Below, piece by piece: positions 30,458 through 55,884 of a DNA stretch of 64,000 nucleotides. The position numbers and the translations under genes are program-made. Every line of letters starts with the position of its first letter. Position 1 is the stretch's first letter. The stretch is taken from sequence record MK599315.1; one strand, written 5' to 3'. Below the pieces are notes generated by a model. That model saw only the letters and a list, made by a program, of their open reading frames with translations. It was not told where the DNA came from and ran no database searches.

Positions 30458-32992
30458 ATGTTGAAGAACATTCACAAATATATCACCAGTCTTGAAGACT
30501 TCGCTGAGAGCTCCACCGAAGTTGAAGATAAGCCTGTTGAAACTGTAGATGCTACTAATGTAGAAGCATCCGCAGAACCGGAAAGCGATGTAGTTGAAGC
30601 AGGCGATGAACTTGCGCAAGCTACCCCCACTGAAGAAGTAAAACCCGATGGTGATCTGGAAACGGTAGAAGAACCTCTTGCTGGTGAAACCAGTGAAGAG
30701 CCGTCTGGTATTCCAGAACCTATGGCTACTACCAATGAATCTGCGGCTGAGGCCGCTGCTGCTCAAGCTGAAGAAGCACAAGCTGCCGAAGTGAAAGAAC
30801 TCACTGAACAGGCCGAACAGATTCAAGCAACCCAACAGGAAACTGTTGAAGCAGCCGCGGCAGATGCTGAGGCCATCGAAGCCAACGAGACAGATGTAAA
30901 TGGTAACACTGTACCTGCTGAAGATACTACTGGTGAACAAAACGTAGATATCACTAATAGCGGCGATGCTGGTGAAACCGAACTGACTAACGATGTTGAA
31001 TCTCTTGATACCGAAACTACTGTCGATGACGGTGGTGAAACTGCTACCGCTGATACCATCGGTGAAGAACCGGAAACCCCGGTTGAAGAAGTAGAAGAGA
31101 CTTCGGAAGCAGAGATTGAAGAAGTAGCTGATGTCAGTGATGCTGCCCCTGAACTCGACAACACTGAGCCGGCCACTGTAGAAGGTGGTGAAACTCAGGG
31201 TGGTGATGAAGAACTACCTGAGTTAGAACCGGAAGCTCAAACCGAAGCAAATGATCAGGTGGATGGTGTTTCTACCCCTGAGGTTGAAGAAGGCGCTGAC
31301 GAAGTCACCGTACCCGAAGTCGAAGAGTCTATCGCGGAAACTACCGAAGAAGAAGTTTCTGAAGATGTAGCTGAAACGGAAGAAGTCAACGAAGAAATCG
31401 CTGAAGATTCCACTGATGATATTCCAGCTGAAGAAACTCCAGTTGAAGAACAAGTGACTGAAACTGAAGAATCTACTGTGGAAGAAATTCCAGCAGAGGA
31501 AGAACCAGTAGTCGAGGAAACTGAAGTCGAAGAAGAAACACCGGCGGAAGTGGAAGAAACTCCTGAAGAAGACATCGTCAACGAAGAGGAAACTCCTGTT
31601 GAGACAGAAGCGGAGGTTGTAGATGAACAAGTCGAAGATCAATCCGAGTCTACCGATGAGACTACAGATGTCACTGAAGACGAACCAGTCCTCGAAGAGA
31701 TCGAAGAAGACGAACCCGATGGAGAAATCGATGATGACGGTGAAGCTAACTTCGATGAAGGTGAACTGGATATCGAGGACGTTGACACTGATGTCACTGA
31801 AGACGATGTAGCCGAAGCCGTAAAAGAAGCCGATGAGGCCGAAGAAGAAGCCGATGCTGATGAAGAGGAAGCGATTGATGCCAGTCGTACAATCGAAGAT
31901 CTTCAGAAAGAGAAGGAGTCTGTAGAAGGCTTCATGGAGATTCTGAAATATGGTCTCTCTCAAGAAAGCTATAGTGTTCAAACTCTTATCCTGAGTCAAG
32001 TTAAACTTGATGAACTCAAGAAAGCATTTGGTGACTATGCTCCTTCCGTTCCTTCGATGGAGCAATATGGTAAAGAAGATCTCGATAAGTACTATGCTGC
32101 TAGTCTTGAGTCTTTCCGCGGTTTCCTTAGTCGTATTACCGGTCTGAAGCGTGCACTGAACGAGAAGTTGATTAAATGGTGGGAAGGTCCCCTCGTTACT
32201 AAAGTTAAGAAGCGTTCTCAAGCACTTAACAAAGATGTCGACCTTGCTCTGACTAAACTTGGTAAGTCCAATATCGGGCGTGAAACCGTTAAAGGTATTT
32301 CTAGCGATATGGCCACCAAAGAAACTAACCTCGTGCAAGCTGTTGCAAAAGATCTTCGTGTCACTTCCGAGATCGCTGTTAAGGGCGTTAAAGACTCTGA
32401 ACGTGCACTGCAAGAAGTAGTAGGTGTCATCAACAAGGCTGTTACTGAAGGTGGTTACGATAAGACTGGTCCGCTAGTTAAGACTGCTCTGAATATCAAA
32501 CCTGCCAAGTATCCGGAAAACATGGCTAACGCTCTCATGGGTGGTTGGGCTATTGAATACGAGAAAGGCCCACGCGGTGGCGATAGTAAGATCGAGGCTT
32601 TGGCATATACTCTGGTACCTGTCTTCAAGAAGATCAAAGTAGAGGATCGCCAAGTTAGTTTCGATGTGACCAAAGCTGATCTAGCGAACATGCTTAAGAT
32701 GGCTAAGGCATACGTCGCCCTGGCTGATAAGCTTGCTGATTCCGTTGGTTCTAAAGCTATCGATGACATTATCAATCTCGACGTTACACGCAACCGTGCA
32801 TTGAGCACTGGCTCCAGTGAGTTCGATACTACTTCCCGTGCATCGGGTTGGGATGAACAAGCTGAACTGGATGATCTGGCTAGTGCAATGCTGAAAGTGT
32901 CTTACGCGCATGTGGATGCGTATAAGTTCGTAACACAGCATGCTCTTGACGTGGCAGATGGTATTGTTAGTGTTGTTCGTAAAGCTCTGTAA
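30458..32992 (+). CDS. Inner-body protein with very long E/D-rich propeptide (gp97-like)
   Basis: 844 aa; roughly the first 470 residues are low-complexity acidic; SME and SLE/SF cleavage-type sites follow. Confidence 0.85.
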   Translation: MLKNIHKYITSLEDFAESSTEVEDKPVETVDATNVEASAEPESDVVEAGDELAQATPTEEVKPDGDLETVEEPLAGETSEEPSGIPEPMATTNESAAEAAAAQAEEAQAAEVKELTEQAEQIQATQQETVEAAAADAEAIEANETDVNGNTVPAEDTTGEQNVDITNSGDAGETELTNDVESLDTETTVDDGGETATADTIGEEPETPVEEVEETSEAEIEEVADVSDAAPELDNTEPATVEGGETQGGDEELPELEPEAQTEANDQVDGVSTPEVEEGADEVTVPEVEESIAETTEEEVSEDVAETEEVNEEIAEDSTDDIPAEETPVEEQVTETEESTVEEIPAEEEPVVEETEVEEETPAEVEETPEEDIVNEEETPVETEAEVVDEQVEDQSESTDETTDVTEDEPVLEEIEEDEPDGEIDDDGEANFDEGELDIEDVDTDVTEDDVAEAVKEADEAEEEADADEEEAIDASRTIEDLQKEKESVEGFMEILKYGLSQESYSVQTLILSQVKLDELKKAFGDYAPSVPSMEQYGKEDLDKYYAASLESFRGFLSRITGLKRALNEKLIKWWEGPLVTKVKKRSQALNKDVDLALTKLGKSNIGRETVKGISSDMATKETNLVQAVAKDLRVTSEIAVKGVKDSERALQEVVGVINKAVTEGGYDKTGPLVKTALNIKPAKYPENMANALMGGWAIEYEKGPRGGDSKIEALAYTLVPVFKKIKVEDRQVSFDVTKADLANMLKMAKAYVALADKLADSVGSKAIDDIINLDVTRNRALSTGSSEFDTTSRASGWDEQAELDDLASAMLKVSYAHVDAYKFVTQHALDVADGIVSVVRKAL

Positions 32993-34719: not shown

Positions 34720-36126
34720 ATGTCTCTTTTTGTAGATGAGGAAGAAATTGCTCCTCAGAGTCCAGAAGTTAATCCTGTTACTGTCAAAGCACGCCCCGAG
34801 GTTTATCGGGGCATTGCCATTGATACAAAGTTCGTACCAAAAAGTTCGATGCTTGCATGGATAAATGGTTCTAACTGGAACGTAACGTATTTCTCACAAA
34901 TTCTTGACGAAACTCAAGAACCAACTCCCCTGGCTCTCCATCGTCAACCACCATATCAACAATACCGTTGCATTAAAGGAATGGATCTTAAGGTTAACCA
35001 ATCTTTAGATATTTCCCAAGATGAACGTATTCGTACATTCTCTGTTACTGGTGCCGGACACACATATCCGTTCCTCGTTCCTAACGTTGGAGATATGTTC
35101 ATTGGTAACATTGGTGATGGTGTACTAGGTCTATTCACTATTACGGCGGCTCGTCGTGAAACATTCTTGCGTGATTCCACATACGCTATCGAATGGAAGA
35201 TGGTGAGTAAACTTAATGAACAACAAGTAGAAGACCTTGAACGTAAGACTATAATCACTTACTATTATTCTGCAAGTTCTCTTACTAGTGGTTGTGGTCC
35301 GTTTGTTACTGAACAAGAACAACAAGATCAAAAAGATTTTGCTGCTCTTCGTAAAGAGATCATTCGGAGATACATTAGTGATTTCTTCTCTGTTGAACAT
35401 AGTACATTCCTGGTACCAGATCAGTTAATGAAAACCTATGACCATTTTGTAACTAAAGCGATGGTTATGATGGTTGACATGAAAACTGATCGACGGATGA
35501 TGAATGTTAAGTTACTGAATGTAATGTCCGAACCTGTAATGAAGCAACCAACTATTTGGGATGCTATCTTACGTCAAGATGCTACCCGTCTTTGCGGTTC
35601 TACTGAACGTGCACATCTCGTAGCTACTAGAATCTCCCGCTGGCGGCCAGAACTACAGGCAATTGGTTATACCGGTATCCCTAGGTTCGTGTTCCCTATC
35701 GAGGGACCAACTGACGTGGATTCACAATACGATGGTGAAGACCGTGCTCGACCAGAAGGAATTCCGTTCCATGAAGGTCAACCACGTCGTCCTCAAATAC
35801 CGTATAAGACGCAAGAAGAACGAAACAGCGAATGGTTTAAACGTGCTGATCCAGATGTCATAAAACAAGATGAAGCGTGGGATCGCCCGGCTGACATCGC
35901 GCCCGTAGTTCGTGATAACTTCTATGTATTTACCGAAGCCTTTTATACGGAAGATGCCAAGCTCCAGACTAAACTGGAAATGTTAACTTGGCAAATGATC
36001 AATCGTCAACCTATGGACATGAACCAATTAAGAAAAGTGACGAAATGTTGCCTTTCGTGGGACAATTTGGAACGATTTTATTATCACCCTGTCCTGATAG
36101 CACTACTTAAATACGCAACGAGGTAA
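34720..36126 (+). CDS. Virion structural protein (gp99-like)
   Basis: 468 aa; [11 protein letters not shown] and [14 protein letters not shown] motifs recalled from the family; synteny. Confidence 0.75.
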
Positions 36127-50678: not shown

Positions 50679-52217
50679 TTAGATAGACCATGCGTCAGAA
50701 TCGAGATCACCGCCAATTACAGACCCAGGAACAACTTTCAGAGAATAATCTTCCTCTTTATCAATGTCCCATGGAATCGTACCGATATTACTAAATGGTA
50801 GAAGAACATATTGGTCTTCTTCTGCCGTTACAGTGTTACGGTGTTTACCACGTTGAATAGCGAGATACGCTTTTCCTTTATGGCGGATGATGTGGTGGAA
50901 CAGCTCAAGGTCAGGTTCCTGACCCAGACGACGACAACCATCGTAATAACCTTTGTTCGCTACTACCTTAACGAAGTCCTCGGTATTTTCACGCATCAGT
51001 TGCAGTGCATCAGAACCAAGCTGATGAGGGCTGATGAAAGTGATACCACGAGGAGTAGTGTAGTTACGCATGCGACGGAATAGAAGACGAATATCGTCAC
51101 CTGCTACTTTAGCATCAAGTCCTGTCTTAGGTAGCATGTTCAGATAGTCAACTACCAGGAATTGAATCTCGTATCCCTGTCCCTGAAGACCATCTAGATA
51201 GTTAGTGAAACCACCAATTGTAAATTCAGTGGGGTCGAATCGAACCATCTTAACTTTAAAGCCATTCTCTTCAAGGCGCGCACAAACATAAGCAGCAGCT
51301 TCACGTTTATCGATATCTTTGACAATGACTTCTTCACCCGTTTCGTTTTCACGGATGTATTTGTAAATAGTCAGAAGGTTATCAGAGATTTCGTTTTCAA
51401 GGGTTGCAAATAGAAGAAGAGGCTTCTTCGATTTATCACGCATCCATGGCTTATTAAACAATGCGACATGTACAAACAGTAACATAACCAGATACGATTT
51501 AAAGTTATGTTGTAGAGCTGCGGTGGTAATAAACTCACCACGACGGAAAGCACCTAGGCTACCCAATACACGGTTGAAACCTTTCCAACCTAGTTTGAAA
51601 GCACCATCGGCAGACAAAGTAGTTTGTACAGCTTCGAAGAATTCTTCTACACCTTCCGGGTTGTCAAAATCAAGGCAACCCATTTCAGCGGGATGTCGAC
51701 TTTCAGCACGAGCCTTTACATAAGGATCGAGCTTAGCTCCCATCTCGTTGATCATACCAGCGATATCATTACCGCCACCACGGTTAAACAGAAGCTTAGT
51801 GGAATACTCTTTCATGATCGCTTTAATAGTTTCATCATTGATGTATTCATTAAGCGAACGACGATAAGAGTTAATCCGGTGCATGATAGCCATCCCATCT
51901 GGGAAGTTTTCATTAACACCATTTAGTACAGCTTCGTAAAGATAGTTCTCTTCACGGCAGCTCACTTGCACAGATTGTAGTACTTCAGCGATACTTGGAA
52001 ATTCGTGCTTAACTTTCTTATTGAGATCTTGAACAAGTTTACGAAGCTCAAGAAAAGTTTGTCGACCATGATCATGATCAACAGTAGTCTCTTTAATTTC
52101 AAGTGAACCAACAATTTTATCAATTAGTTCAGTAGACGGAGAGGCCGGAGAATCTGGGCGGTGCTCCAAGCAAAGCAGGGTAACGCAACTGACAAGAAGC
52201 TGTTTTGGGGAGGACAT
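50679..52217 (-). CDS. dnaB: DnaB-like replicative helicase (phiKZ gp118-like)
   Basis: RRGEFITTAALQHNFKS (P-loop region), FATLEN, LVVDYLNML (Walker B) and SPHQL motifs; synteny before gp119/gp120. Confidence 0.9.
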   Translation of the reverse strand: MSSPKQLLVSCVTLLCLEHRPDSPASPSTELIDKIVGSLEIKETTVDHDHGRQTFLELRKLVQDLNKKVKHEFPSIAEVLQSVQVSCREENYLYEAVLNGVNENFPDGMAIMHRINSYRRSLNEYINDETIKAIMKEYSTKLLFNRGGGNDIAGMINEMGAKLDPYVKARAESRHPAEMGCLDFDNPEGVEEFFEAVQTTLSADGAFKLGWKGFNRVLGSLGAFRRGEFITTAALQHNFKSYLVMLLFVHVALFNKPWMRDKSKKPLLLFATLENEISDNLLTIYKYIRENETGEEVIVKDIDKREAAAYVCARLEENGFKVKMVRFDPTEFTIGGFTNYLDGLQGQGYEIQFLVVDYLNMLPKTGLDAKVAGDDIRLLFRRMRNYTTPRGITFISPHQLGSDALQLMRENTEDFVKVVANKGYYDGCRRLGQEPDLELFHHIIRHKGKAYLAIQRGKHRNTVTAEEDQYVLLPFSNIGTIPWDIDKEEDYSLKVVPGSVIGGDLDSDAWSI

Positions 52218-52962: not shown

Positions 52963-55188
52963 ATGAAAGACCTTAAATCTCTGTTCAAAGTGAACGGCGA
53001 CCGCGACCTGACTCGTTTCTCCATGGAATCCTTCCTTGGTAAACTGGACCTGGAAAAAGACTACGGCGACAGCATCCTGTCCGCTGGTAGCAAACTGATT
53101 AGTAAGATCGGTCTGGAAAACTTCGGCCAACTGAGCGACGAAGATGCTCAAAGTGCTGCTGGTATGTACGCTAGCCTGCAAAAAGTTGCCCGTCAGTGTG
53201 GCTTCGAATCCTTCGAAGGCGCTAACAGCCGTGTAGGCGAAAACCAACTGTCCGCTGCCACCATGGCTGCCCTGGCAATGTCCAACTCCACTGAGTACGT
53301 TAAGGCTCTGAAACAAGTTGGTAAGAAAATTGCTTCCACTGACAAGAACGTCATTTCGGTTGAACACCGTTTCGACGGCCCGGCTGGTTCGATCCAAACT
53401 TTCGAAGCTGCTGCTGGCGTCGGTCTGGAAAACTACAACGAGAAATCCCAGCGTGACTTCCGCGTTGTGACCGTTGGTTATAACCTGGCCGCTTCCCGTC
53501 AGGATGAGTTCGCTGAGCGTATCTATCCGACCACCGTTATCAACCCGATTGAAGGTGGTGTTGTTCAGGTTCTTCCGTACATCGCGGTAATGAAAGACGT
53601 TTACCACGCTGTTTCCGGTCAGAAGCTCGACAACCAAGAAGTCAACATGGTTGAAGCCTATCGTGATCCGTCCATCCTGGACGACGAGTGCACTGCACTG
53701 ATCCCGGCTATCGATCCTGCTGGCACTAACCTGAAGTACTTCGCTGATCCGGCTCTGCTGCCTCCGGTAACCGTTATCAACGAACAAAACATGTCCATCG
53801 AAACTGCGCCGCTGAAGCCGGGCGGTAAACTGGACCTGATGGGTAACTCGAACGCCAACCTGCTGATCAACAAAGGCATGCTGGACATTTCGGATACCAT
53901 CGATCCGTCGGGCCGCCTGAAGGCTCTGTACGTTAAGTTCCAAGGTAAAGTCATCAAGTTCCAAACTGAACGTCTGCCGCGCGCAGTGTTCCAGCCGGAC
54001 CTGGTTGGTGATACCCGCGGTGCCAAGATCGACTTCTGGTCGGATGACCTGACTGTTTCGGCCGTAACCCGCACTACTGACGCTGCACAAACTGCTGGCA
54101 TGAAAGAACTGGAACAACGTAAGTGGGTTCTGCGTCTGAGCATGCAATTCAGTGGTCACATCAGCCTGAGCCGTGGCGATAGCCGTTTCACCATCGGTGA
54201 AGTAACTATCGATCGCATCCTGGACGAAGACAAGCGTCGCATCGACCTGGAAACTGGCGATGGTAAAGCTCTGGCCGACAGCATTGGCGAAATGGAAATC
54301 GTTGGTTTCGACCTCGACACCCGCTTCACCAACACTAACCGCCGTCAGCGTGGTCACCTGCTGCAAACTCGTGCCCTGCAATTCCGTCACCCGATTCCGA
54401 TGCATGCTCCGGTTACCCTGCCGCTGAGCACCATGGACGAAGAAGGTCCGGGCGAAGTTGTTAAGGCTCTGACTGTCAACACCAACATCCGTAACAGCAA
54501 CAACGCTGTTAAGCGCCTGCTGAACTACCTGGCTCAGCTGAAAGAAGTAACCGCTAACGGTTTCGACCGTCCGCAGTTCGGTGCTGTTGAAGGTGCTCTG
54601 TCCGCAGTAATGCGTCCGACCTACCGCTACAAGAAGCTGCACCTGCCTGACATGATCGACACCCTGAAGTCGCAAGACCGTTGGGAAGACGTCTGCTCGG
54701 CAATCCTGAACGCTGTTAAAGGTGTACTGTTCCCGGCTTACCGTGAATCCAACATCGAAGCAGCTTTCCGCGTGATCTCCGGTAACCAAGACGAGCGTCC
54801 GATGTTCCTGTTCTGCTCGGACAAAGAGATCGCTAACTATCTGATGACCAAGGGCGACGATCGTACCCTGGGCGCTTACCTGGAATACGACCTGGTATCG
54901 ACCAACAACGAACTGTTCGACGGTAAGCTGGTAGTGATTCCGACCCGTAAGACTCCGCAAGAGAACGACATCCTCAGCTTCGGTCAATTCTACTACGTAT
55001 CGACCGTAATCGCCGACCTGCCGATCACCCGTGGTGGCCAGCAAGTTACTCGCGAAATCGCTGCGATTCCGTTCAACCTGCACGTTAACAACATCCCGTT
55101 CGCTCTCGAATTCGACGTTACTGGCTTCGAAGAAGTGATGGGTGAGTCTCAGTGGAACAAGCCCCTGGTTGAAGCCGTAAAAGGTTGA
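52963..55188 (+). CDS. Major capsid protein (phiKZ gp120-like)
   Basis: 741 aa; GLE/NY maturation site; SRQDEFAERIYPT, RTTNIRN-like NTNIRNSNNAV and PFNLHVNNIP motifs; strongest codon bias in the window. Confidence 0.93.
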   Translation: MKDLKSLFKVNGDRDLTRFSMESFLGKLDLEKDYGDSILSAGSKLISKIGLENFGQLSDEDAQSAAGMYASLQKVARQCGFESFEGANSRVGENQLSAATMAALAMSNSTEYVKALKQVGKKIASTDKNVISVEHRFDGPAGSIQTFEAAAGVGLENYNEKSQRDFRVVTVGYNLAASRQDEFAERIYPTTVINPIEGGVVQVLPYIAVMKDVYHAVSGQKLDNQEVNMVEAYRDPSILDDECTALIPAIDPAGTNLKYFADPALLPPVTVINEQNMSIETAPLKPGGKLDLMGNSNANLLINKGMLDISDTIDPSGRLKALYVKFQGKVIKFQTERLPRAVFQPDLVGDTRGAKIDFWSDDLTVSAVTRTTDAAQTAGMKELEQRKWVLRLSMQFSGHISLSRGDSRFTIGEVTIDRILDEDKRRIDLETGDGKALADSIGEMEIVGFDLDTRFTNTNRRQRGHLLQTRALQFRHPIPMHAPVTLPLSTMDEEGPGEVVKALTVNTNIRNSNNAVKRLLNYLAQLKEVTANGFDRPQFGAVEGALSAVMRPTYRYKKLHLPDMIDTLKSQDRWEDVCSAILNAVKGVLFPAYRESNIEAAFRVISGNQDERPMFLFCSDKEIANYLMTKGDDRTLGAYLEYDLVSTNNELFDGKLVVIPTRKTPQENDILSFGQFYYVSTVIADLPITRGGQQVTREIAAIPFNLHVNNIPFALEFDVTGFEEVMGESQWNKPLVEAVKG

Positions 55189-55272
55189 ACTGGAAAGGGT
55201 ACCTTCCGTAAGCTTGAAAATGGTACTACCCGTTATCTTGAAGACGGAGTGGCCCGCCGCCTAGAGCGGTAA
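55189..55272 (+). other. Putative in-frame readthrough extension of the major capsid protein
   Basis: After GGT TGA the frame continues TGKGTFRKLENGTTRYLEDGVARRLER* with three 8-residue repeats. Confidence 0.5.
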
Positions 55273-55304
55273 AGCGGAAGTGTTAAGCTGACTGCTGGCA
55301 TAAC

Positions 55305-55333
55305 AGCCTCTACCCGAAGGTAGAGGCTTTATG
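55305..55333 (+). terminator. Capsid operon terminator
   Basis: AGCCTCTACC-CGAA-GGTAGAGGCT-TTATG. Confidence 0.85.
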
Positions 55334-55358
55334 TCGTCATTAAAAAATATTTCAAATC

Positions 55359-55366
55359 TATATTAC
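55359..55366 (+). promoter_or_regulatory. phiKZ-type early promoter motif
   Basis: ATTTCAAATC-TATATTAC; no palindromic right arm here. Confidence 0.6.
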
Positions 55367-55404
55367 GGTATTGAAGAATCATTCCCTAATTAGAGGATCA
55401 GACA

Positions 55405-55884
55405 ATGTTCTGGAATACACACGGGCATCATGTTGAGCAAGAGCTCACTGATTCCCAAATGAATCCTGGCGACATTGTCGTCATGAAAGAAAATACTACG
55501 GTTAGTAATAATACGTCTAACCAAACCAATTCTCAAACCACCACTACTATTCATCCTACCCAGGATGAGAATATGTCCCATTTTGCTAATCGCTTCGAGA
55601 AGCAAATAAGACATGTTAATATATCCAATGGCCGTTGTTATGAATCGGGAGGTACCCCTGAAGAAAAACAACGTTCGCGCAACACGCGGAAGGGTAAAGG
55701 TAAAACGCGTGTTGCGCATGGGAAACGTGGAGACAGAAATCATAGAGATTCGAAAGCATCCCAAACGAGTCGATATGAACCTAGTCAAGAACGGAGTAGG
55801 CCCAAAGGACGTAAAGTAGAAATGGTATTGGATAGGATTGTTTTAAATGGTAAAGATCAACCGTTCCCGTGCGGGTCATATTGA
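55405..55884 (+). CDS. Hypothetical low-complexity protein (reading frame uncertain)
   Basis: RBS GAGGA; competing overlapping frame 55613-55819 is also protein-like. Confidence 0.4.
   Translation: MFWNTHGHHVEQELTDSQMNPGDIVVMKENTTVSNNTSNQTNSQTTTTIHPTQDENMSHFANRFEKQIRHVNISNGRCYESGGTPEEKQRSRNTRKGKGKTRVAHGKRGDRNHRDSKASQTSRYEPSQERSRPKGRKVEMVLDRIVLNGKDQPFPCGSY

Follow-up and report, generated by a model that had tools for sequence, protein, structure and literature searches.

The gene that encodes the major capsid protein (MCP) of Pseudomonas phage PA1C ends with a UGA codon, behind which the same reading frame stays open for 27 codons that encode a short repeat peptide, here called the tail. Comparison with related phages makes it likely that this UGA is subject to a conserved, programmed readthrough at a low level, and that the product is a minor MCP isoform whose tail, of the type present at the C-terminus of phiKZ gp143, is translated and under selection. 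The gene lies in a 64,000-nt stretch of DNA (the window) that matches the PA1C record MK599315.1 with 100% identity, and window coordinates are the record coordinates minus 62,000.

The reading frame behind the MCP stop and its conservation

The PA1C MCP matched phiKZ gp120 in PDB 8y6v with an E-value of 0 (phmmer), and the last codons of its open reading frame (ORF) are GGT-TGA. An earlier note, made from the DNA of the window alone, had claimed that this TGA is followed by an A at position +4, that the frame remains open for 27 codons up to a TAA, that no start codon precedes the repeats encoded there, and that a terminator lies past the second stop. These features were all borne out by the sequence, its translation and RNA folding (Table 1). 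The repeats, described in the note as R-x-L-E-[N/D]-G units with an 8-residue period, were recovered as two full units and a truncated third. The first R-x-L-E-[N/D]-G-x-x unit (55207-55230) covers residues 7-14 of the tail, the second (55231-55254) residues 15-22 and the final R-R-L-E-R (55255-55269) residues 23-27, with a period of exactly 8 residues. The earliest start-type codon in the tail frame of PA1C is a GTG at tail codon 21, which is past the first two units, and no ATG, GTG or TTG was found in this frame upstream of it.

Table 1. Features at the 3' end of the PA1C MCP gene, in window coordinates.
Feature	Coordinates	Strand	Basis or remark
MCP gene, TGA stop included	52963..55188	+	741-aa ORF; annotated major capsid protein in MK599315.1; phiKZ gp120 homologue
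UGA, proposed readthrough site; leaky-type stop, +4 base A	55186..55188	+	TGA in 22/22 tail-bearing lineages
In-frame extension (proposed readthrough tail), 27 codons	55189..55269	+	Translation; MK599315.1 annotates no feature there
Repeat module	55207..55269	+	Tail translation; profile match to gp143-family C-terminus
Second stop TAA, end of extension	55270..55272	+	Sequence and translation
Terminator-like hairpin: 10-bp stem, 4-nt CGAA loop, then TTTAT	55305..55328	+	RNA fold; 3' of second stop

Since the terminator-like hairpin is located 3' of the second stop, the tail region is carried on the MCP mRNA. A hairpin with a different stem sequence, followed by CTTTATG, was observed at the same position in nearly all relatives. 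The PA1C hairpin was not matched by a simple terminator scanner because its T-run is short. An Rfam scan of 54900-55500 returned two matches only, both of them due to chance, one at this hairpin.

To compare the region among relatives, MCP 3' junctions were collected from seven cultured phages (PA1C, HPP-Temi, PhiPA3, Phabio, Viktualia, 201phi2-1 and KTN4/phiKZ) that belong to different genera and from Noxifer, together with 26 IMG/VR contigs and five metagenome contigs. The final total was 22 distinct tail-bearing lineages; the frame-stop counts given below are for 20 distinct extension DNAs. The tail was found in all the cultured phages just named, in Psa21 and in 14 uncultured lineages. In the 22 lineages, which reach down to 61% identity at the MCP C-terminus, the first stop is TGA and is followed by 24-31 open in-frame codons, which end with TAA, TGA or TAG and encode two to three R-x-x-E-[D/N/S]-G units. 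The initial codons of the tail vary among lineages, and none of them is ATG, GTG or TTG.

The pattern of change in this region is that of a coding sequence. While no stop was found in frame 0 of the tails, the +1 and +2 frames contained 28 and 29 stops, and every indel between lineages was a whole-codon indel. The pooled ratio of non-synonymous to synonymous differences (pN/pS) was 0.61 in frame 0, where pS is saturated (0.61), compared with 0.83 and 1.07 in the shifted frames, and it was 0.33 for close pairs. The tails of PA1C and HPP-Temi differ by 4 synonymous and no non-synonymous changes. At conserved positions the codons alternate between families (Arg CGN/AGR, Ser AGC/TCC and Leu CTN/TTR), which marks selection at the level of the amino acid rather than of the RNA. 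Four columns, R7, E10, G12 and G20 in PA1C numbering, are invariant. The earlier note had proposed to survey phiKZ-like genomes, past the capsid stop, for a frame that is kept open, for RxLE[DN]G repeats and for a low ratio of non-synonymous to synonymous substitution (dN/dS), and the comparison described here found each of them. Two annotated small hypothetical proteins extend across the MCP 3' end in other frames, one in HPP-Temi (L002:1443-1586) and one in Viktualia (L005:1470-1568). Because their frames are full of stops in relatives, these annotations are probably spurious and lie over the real tail frame.

A 27-codon opening alone is ordinary in a single genome, since 12 of the 52 long ORFs in the window show at least 25 open codons past their stop. 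Single units of the motif occur in the PA1C genome at 3.3e-5 per codon. Across the six reading frames of the complete 304,671-bp genome (609,338 codons), the tandem motif was found exactly twice, once in the MCP tail and once at the C-terminus of the gp143 homologue. As judged from the sequences compared, the conservation of the tail across genomes is far beyond chance.

Stop codon identity and loss of the tail

The earlier note had considered a miscalled sense codon as the alternative to a genuine stop. This can be excluded, as TGA was read in PA1C itself, in a phage with 94% identity and in all the remoter tail-bearing lineages examined. Among the long ORFs of PA1C, TGA is the stop of 90 out of 321 (28%), with TAA ending 200 and TAG 31; TGA is thus a regular, less frequent stop, and the genetic code is not altered. 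The base at +4 after the tail-bearing TGA is A in 14 lineages, G in 7, C in one and T in none, i.e., a purine in 21 of 22, whereas T follows 31% of the other TGA stops of PA1C. The final MCP residue in tail-bearing lineages is a small one (Ala, Pro, Gly or Val).

In a neighbour-joining tree built from MCP C-termini, the TGA together with the tail came out as ancestral to the Pseudomonas phiKZ-like clade. Three independent losses of the tail were observed, in L028-L034, in L040 and in L039, which is nested beside Psa21, and the stop is TAA in all three. A remnant of the 3' end of the tail is retained in L039 next to its terminator. The outgroups RTH11, Simmy50 and SPN3US are tail-less and stop with TAA. 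Of 110 MCP clusters in a collection of 5.8 billion proteins, not one carried the tail fused as ordinary sense sequence. In the sequences compared, the tail, wherever present, always sits behind a stop.

Some other MCP 3' ends deserve mention. The MCP of contig L027 (IMGVR_UViG_3300043122_000192) ends with TGA-A, though it is placed in a clade that is otherwise tail-less and TAA-ending. In frame after this TGA lies a 203-codon ORF (L027:1942-2556) with a Big_2 Ig-like domain (E = 4e-9) and its own ATG two codons past the stop, which could be a second readthrough cargo or merely an adjacent decoration gene. At the MCP 3' end of Escherichia phage Goslar (L051:1088-1177), TGA-A is likewise the stop, and the 28 in-frame codons left open behind it do not contain the R-x-x-E-D-G motif. 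In deep tail-less MCP lineages (P0139, P0142, P0151, P0165, P0177-P0186; L028-L034), every subunit has a longer low-complexity C-terminus rich in Gly, Thr, Asp and Pro, which may be a different solution for the same surface position.

The gp143-family C-terminal module

A tblastn search with the tail peptide found the C-terminus of Noxifer protein 141. The homologues of this protein are phiKZ gp143 (L035:1489-2022) and a PA1C protein outside the window (record 143529-144062; L036:1501-2034), which is annotated as a virion structural protein. All 53 of the 53 aligned gp143-family members end in a module of the tail type. When the MCP tails were aligned with the gp143-family C-termini (hhalign), the match had a probability of 97.7% and an E-value of 1.5e-12, and its 26 columns stay in register up to the C-terminus. 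This profile comparison identifies the MCP tail as a homologue of the module at the end of gp143-family proteins. The shared module consists of two 8-residue R-x-L-E-x-G-x-x units and a final R-x-L-E-x, located at the very C-terminus of both.

The two contexts differ in that the module of gp143 is sense sequence after a DUF7941 domain of about 150 residues, whereas in the MCP it stands behind a stop. Only the short module is shared: the MCP tail is without the DUF7941 (PF25613) globular domain and gave no match when it was used as a query against Pfam. A search of the PDB with the tail profile returned one chance match of 11 residues only. The AlphaFold2 (AF2) model of the gp143 homologue has a predicted local distance difference test (pLDDT) score of 88, and the repeat region, which scores 74-78, shows isolated beta-bridges with an 8-residue period. 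For the globular part, the top Foldseek match was a chain of the phiKZ outer peripheral baseplate. The module is more widespread in gp143 than in the MCP, as it is kept on a contig whose MCP tail is absent; the idea that both tails were lost jointly was rejected, because the gp143 tail persists without the MCP tail. The idea that linkers of other DUF7941 proteins contain these repeats was not borne out for a gp127-like paralogue, whose linker is without the motif.

Proposed decoding of the UGA and proposed place of the tail in the capsid

We propose that a weak UGA ends the MCP gene in PA1C and the Pseudomonas phiKZ-like clade. Most ribosomes would stop at this codon and release the normal 741-aa subunit, while a small share would decode the UGA by a host near-cognate tRNA and translate 27 more codons, giving a minor MCP with a C-terminal tail made of a short linker and two and a half R-x-L-E-[D/N]-G-x-x units. 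Passive leakage of this kind is the simplest decoding mechanism. UGA leakage in bacteria typically involves tRNA-Trp as the near-cognate tRNA, and by analogy the decoding tRNA would most probably be tRNA-Trp here as well.

A hairpin starting 4 nt 3' of the UGA, which the earlier note had pointed out, did not hold up. It was absent from the minimum-free-energy fold and was not conserved, and the first 50 nt past the UGA in PA1C fold no better than shuffled sequences (z = +0.18). The folds of these 50 nt were inconsistent from lineage to lineage and shuffle-like in most lineages. The RNAalifold consensus was weak, with an energy of -3.9 kcal/mol and a covariation term of -0.2. A stimulatory 3' context or RNA structure accompanies many known readthrough sites, though not all of them.

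A dedicated route of decoding, through selenocysteine insertion or a suppressor tRNA of the phage, was also considered, since UGA is the selenocysteine codon and tRNAs are encoded by phages of this group. However, no conserved hairpin directly 3' of the UGA, the position of a bacterial selenocysteine insertion sequence (SECIS), and no match to an Rfam family were found. The 8 tRNAs that ARAGORN predicted across the complete PA1C genome (two for Leu and one each for Asp, Thr, Tyr, Asn, Met and Pro) include none with a UCA anticodon. Reassignment of UGA is contradicted by the same lack of a UGA-reading phage tRNA and by the use of TGA as an ordinary stop described above. In addition, the trait is shared by phages whose hosts are several Pseudomonas species, and a dedicated route appears most improbable. 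Two of the PA1C tRNAs are of unusual size: tRNA-Tyr, with 89 nt (L043:38519-38607, record 293190-293278), is unusually long for its type, and tRNA-Asn, with 87 nt (L043:41999-42085, record 296670-296756), especially so.

Three further explanations do not involve readthrough of the MCP stop. The conserved stretch could be an RNA or DNA element that is never translated, such as a stabiliser in the 3' untranslated region, a set of regulator sites with a 24-nt period or a part of the terminator. Its position between the stop and the terminator would suit such an element; the fold of the 167-nt region is better than that of shuffled sequences (z = -3.9), an effect of the terminator hairpin, and a few compensatory changes are seen in one possible long-range helix. 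This explanation is nevertheless very unlikely, given the weak consensus structure and the shuffle-like first 50 nt. The conservation tracks amino acids, as seen in the codon-family switches, the whole-codon indels and frame 0 being the only stop-free one, and the gp143 family, whose members are bona fide proteins, encodes an equal peptide module with different nucleotides. Moreover, an RNA element gives no reason for the use of TGA over TAA.

The same preference for TGA bears on the possibility that the tail is a separate small peptide, made by reinitiation or from a non-canonical start after the MCP stop. The region is on the mRNA, and the in-frame Big_2 ORF of contig L027 has its own ATG just past the TGA. 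Reinitiation, however, would work equally well after TAA, which leaves the strict link between TGA and tail unexplained, and the absence of start-type codons, both ahead of tail codon 21 in PA1C and among the varied first codons of all lineages, also makes a separate peptide very improbable. The least probable explanation is that the tail is a functionless, decaying remnant of a longer MCP left by a nonsense mutation. It would be in line with the outright loss of the tail in three lineages, which indicates that the tail is not essential everywhere, but with pS saturated, no lineage has acquired an in-frame stop or a frameshift across the 24-31 codons, and four tail columns are invariant. A dead tail would also not hold TGA and then turn to TAA exactly upon deletion of the tail.

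Readthrough of the MCP stop as proposed here has counterparts in known systems. In phage Qbeta, a leaky UGA ends the coat gene, and incorporation of the extended subunit A1 reaches a few per cent; a host near-cognate tRNA reads the UGA with no dedicated factor, and the product is experimentally established. The likeness lies in a leaky UGA at the end of a coat or capsid gene that gives a minor extended subunit. Qbeta is an unrelated single-stranded RNA virus with a T=3 capsid, whereas PA1C is a double-stranded DNA (dsDNA) jumbo phage with a T=27 capsid of an HK97-fold MCP, and the sequences are unrelated. In Qbeta the extension forms a large folded domain, whereas the PA1C-type extension, predicted from its conservation, is a repeat peptide of 24-31 residues. 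T7 10B and other structural proteins of tailed phages have minor longer isoforms made by -1 or +1 frameshifting. As proposed for PA1C, T7, a tailed dsDNA phage, gains a minor longer isoform of a major structural protein through translational recoding at the 3' end of its gene, but the extension of 10B is in another frame, while that of the PA1C MCP is in frame 0 directly behind the stop. T4 Hoc is a separate Ig-like protein, which binds after assembly with one copy per hexamer. The tail would resemble it as a dispensable, surface-exposed addition at the centre of the MCP hexamer, a location suggested by the phiKZ structure; unlike Hoc, the addition in PA1C would be covalent, far smaller and limited by the decoding frequency.

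[quoted passage not shown] By comparison with this capsid, the tail would emerge at the capsomer centres. It would probably be tolerable on a minority of subunits only, since six copies would hardly fit at the hexamer centre. We propose that the tail is always behind a stop and never constitutively fused because it is tolerated on few subunits only. A T=27 head has ~1,615 MCP copies (bioRxiv 10.64898/2026.04.21.720040), and a basal leakage of 0.1-3% would give roughly 2-50 tails per head.

With regard to function, we tentatively suggest a low-copy docking or adhesion peptide displayed on the surface, which would do on the head what the module does on gp143. One paper reports that gp143 regulates lysis, is not essential and binds the holin (PMC12894885). 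A 2026 preprint lists it among the DUF7941 proteins of phiKZ, and a 2026 preprint proposes that DUF7941 N-terminal domains assemble head-to-tail into host-recognition filaments. That tailed MCPs engage the partner of gp143, being either a DUF7941 N-terminal domain or the lysis machinery regulated by gp143, is conceivable and rather unlikely. If the docking function is true, capsids would be physically linked to a fibre cloud or to lysis timing, and UGA leakage would set the stoichiometry of the tail and spare the six-helix bundle at the hexamer centres.

Several observations weigh against the tailed isoform or its proposed function. The phiKZ MCP was modelled up to its annotated last residue, 747, and the model includes no tail (PMC11297242). 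The tail peptide strings, tryptic ones included, were not found in the literature searched. Purifying selection on the tail is only moderate (pN/pS 0.33-0.61), and at least three losses indicate that the tail is dispensable in some lineages. A conserved stimulatory RNA structure after the UGA was not found in the folds of the relatives, so that readthrough could be very low. As for the function, the gp143 tail is kept without the MCP tail, and hence the two tails are not co-dependent. Together with the linker of the gp127-like paralogue, which is without the motif, this makes any specific partner tentative.

The earlier note had stated that nothing of the kind was described for phiKZ-like phages, and our literature search agrees: no report of stop-codon readthrough in the MCP of phiKZ-like, jumbo or other tailed phages was found, a search for phiKZ ribosome profiling gave no description of the tail, and recent structural papers on phiKZ are silent on it. 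As far as could be found, no other tailed dsDNA phage is known to have an MCP extended by stop-codon readthrough, and this would be the first. Among nucleus-forming jumbo phages, phiKZ serves as the model; its capsid is available at near-atomic resolution and its virion proteome has been catalogued, always against the 747-aa MCP. If the tailed isoform exists, each such proteome search and model missed a virion component, and a giant capsid would gain a low-copy surface feature simply from leakage of termination. The link to gp143 (DUF7941) would also provide a handle on two poorly understood proteins.

Two other observations were made in the window. Several long ORFs that end with TAA (30458-32992; 34720-36126; 50679-52217 on the minus strand; and others) precede in-frame open stretches of 90-574 codons, which look like same-frame neighbouring genes or split genes and have nothing to do with the MCP case. 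A TATATTAC motif lies at 55359-55366, past the MCP terminator and ahead of the following gene (55405-55884), and is conserved at the same place in all relatives; we take it to resemble the early-promoter consensus of phiKZ.

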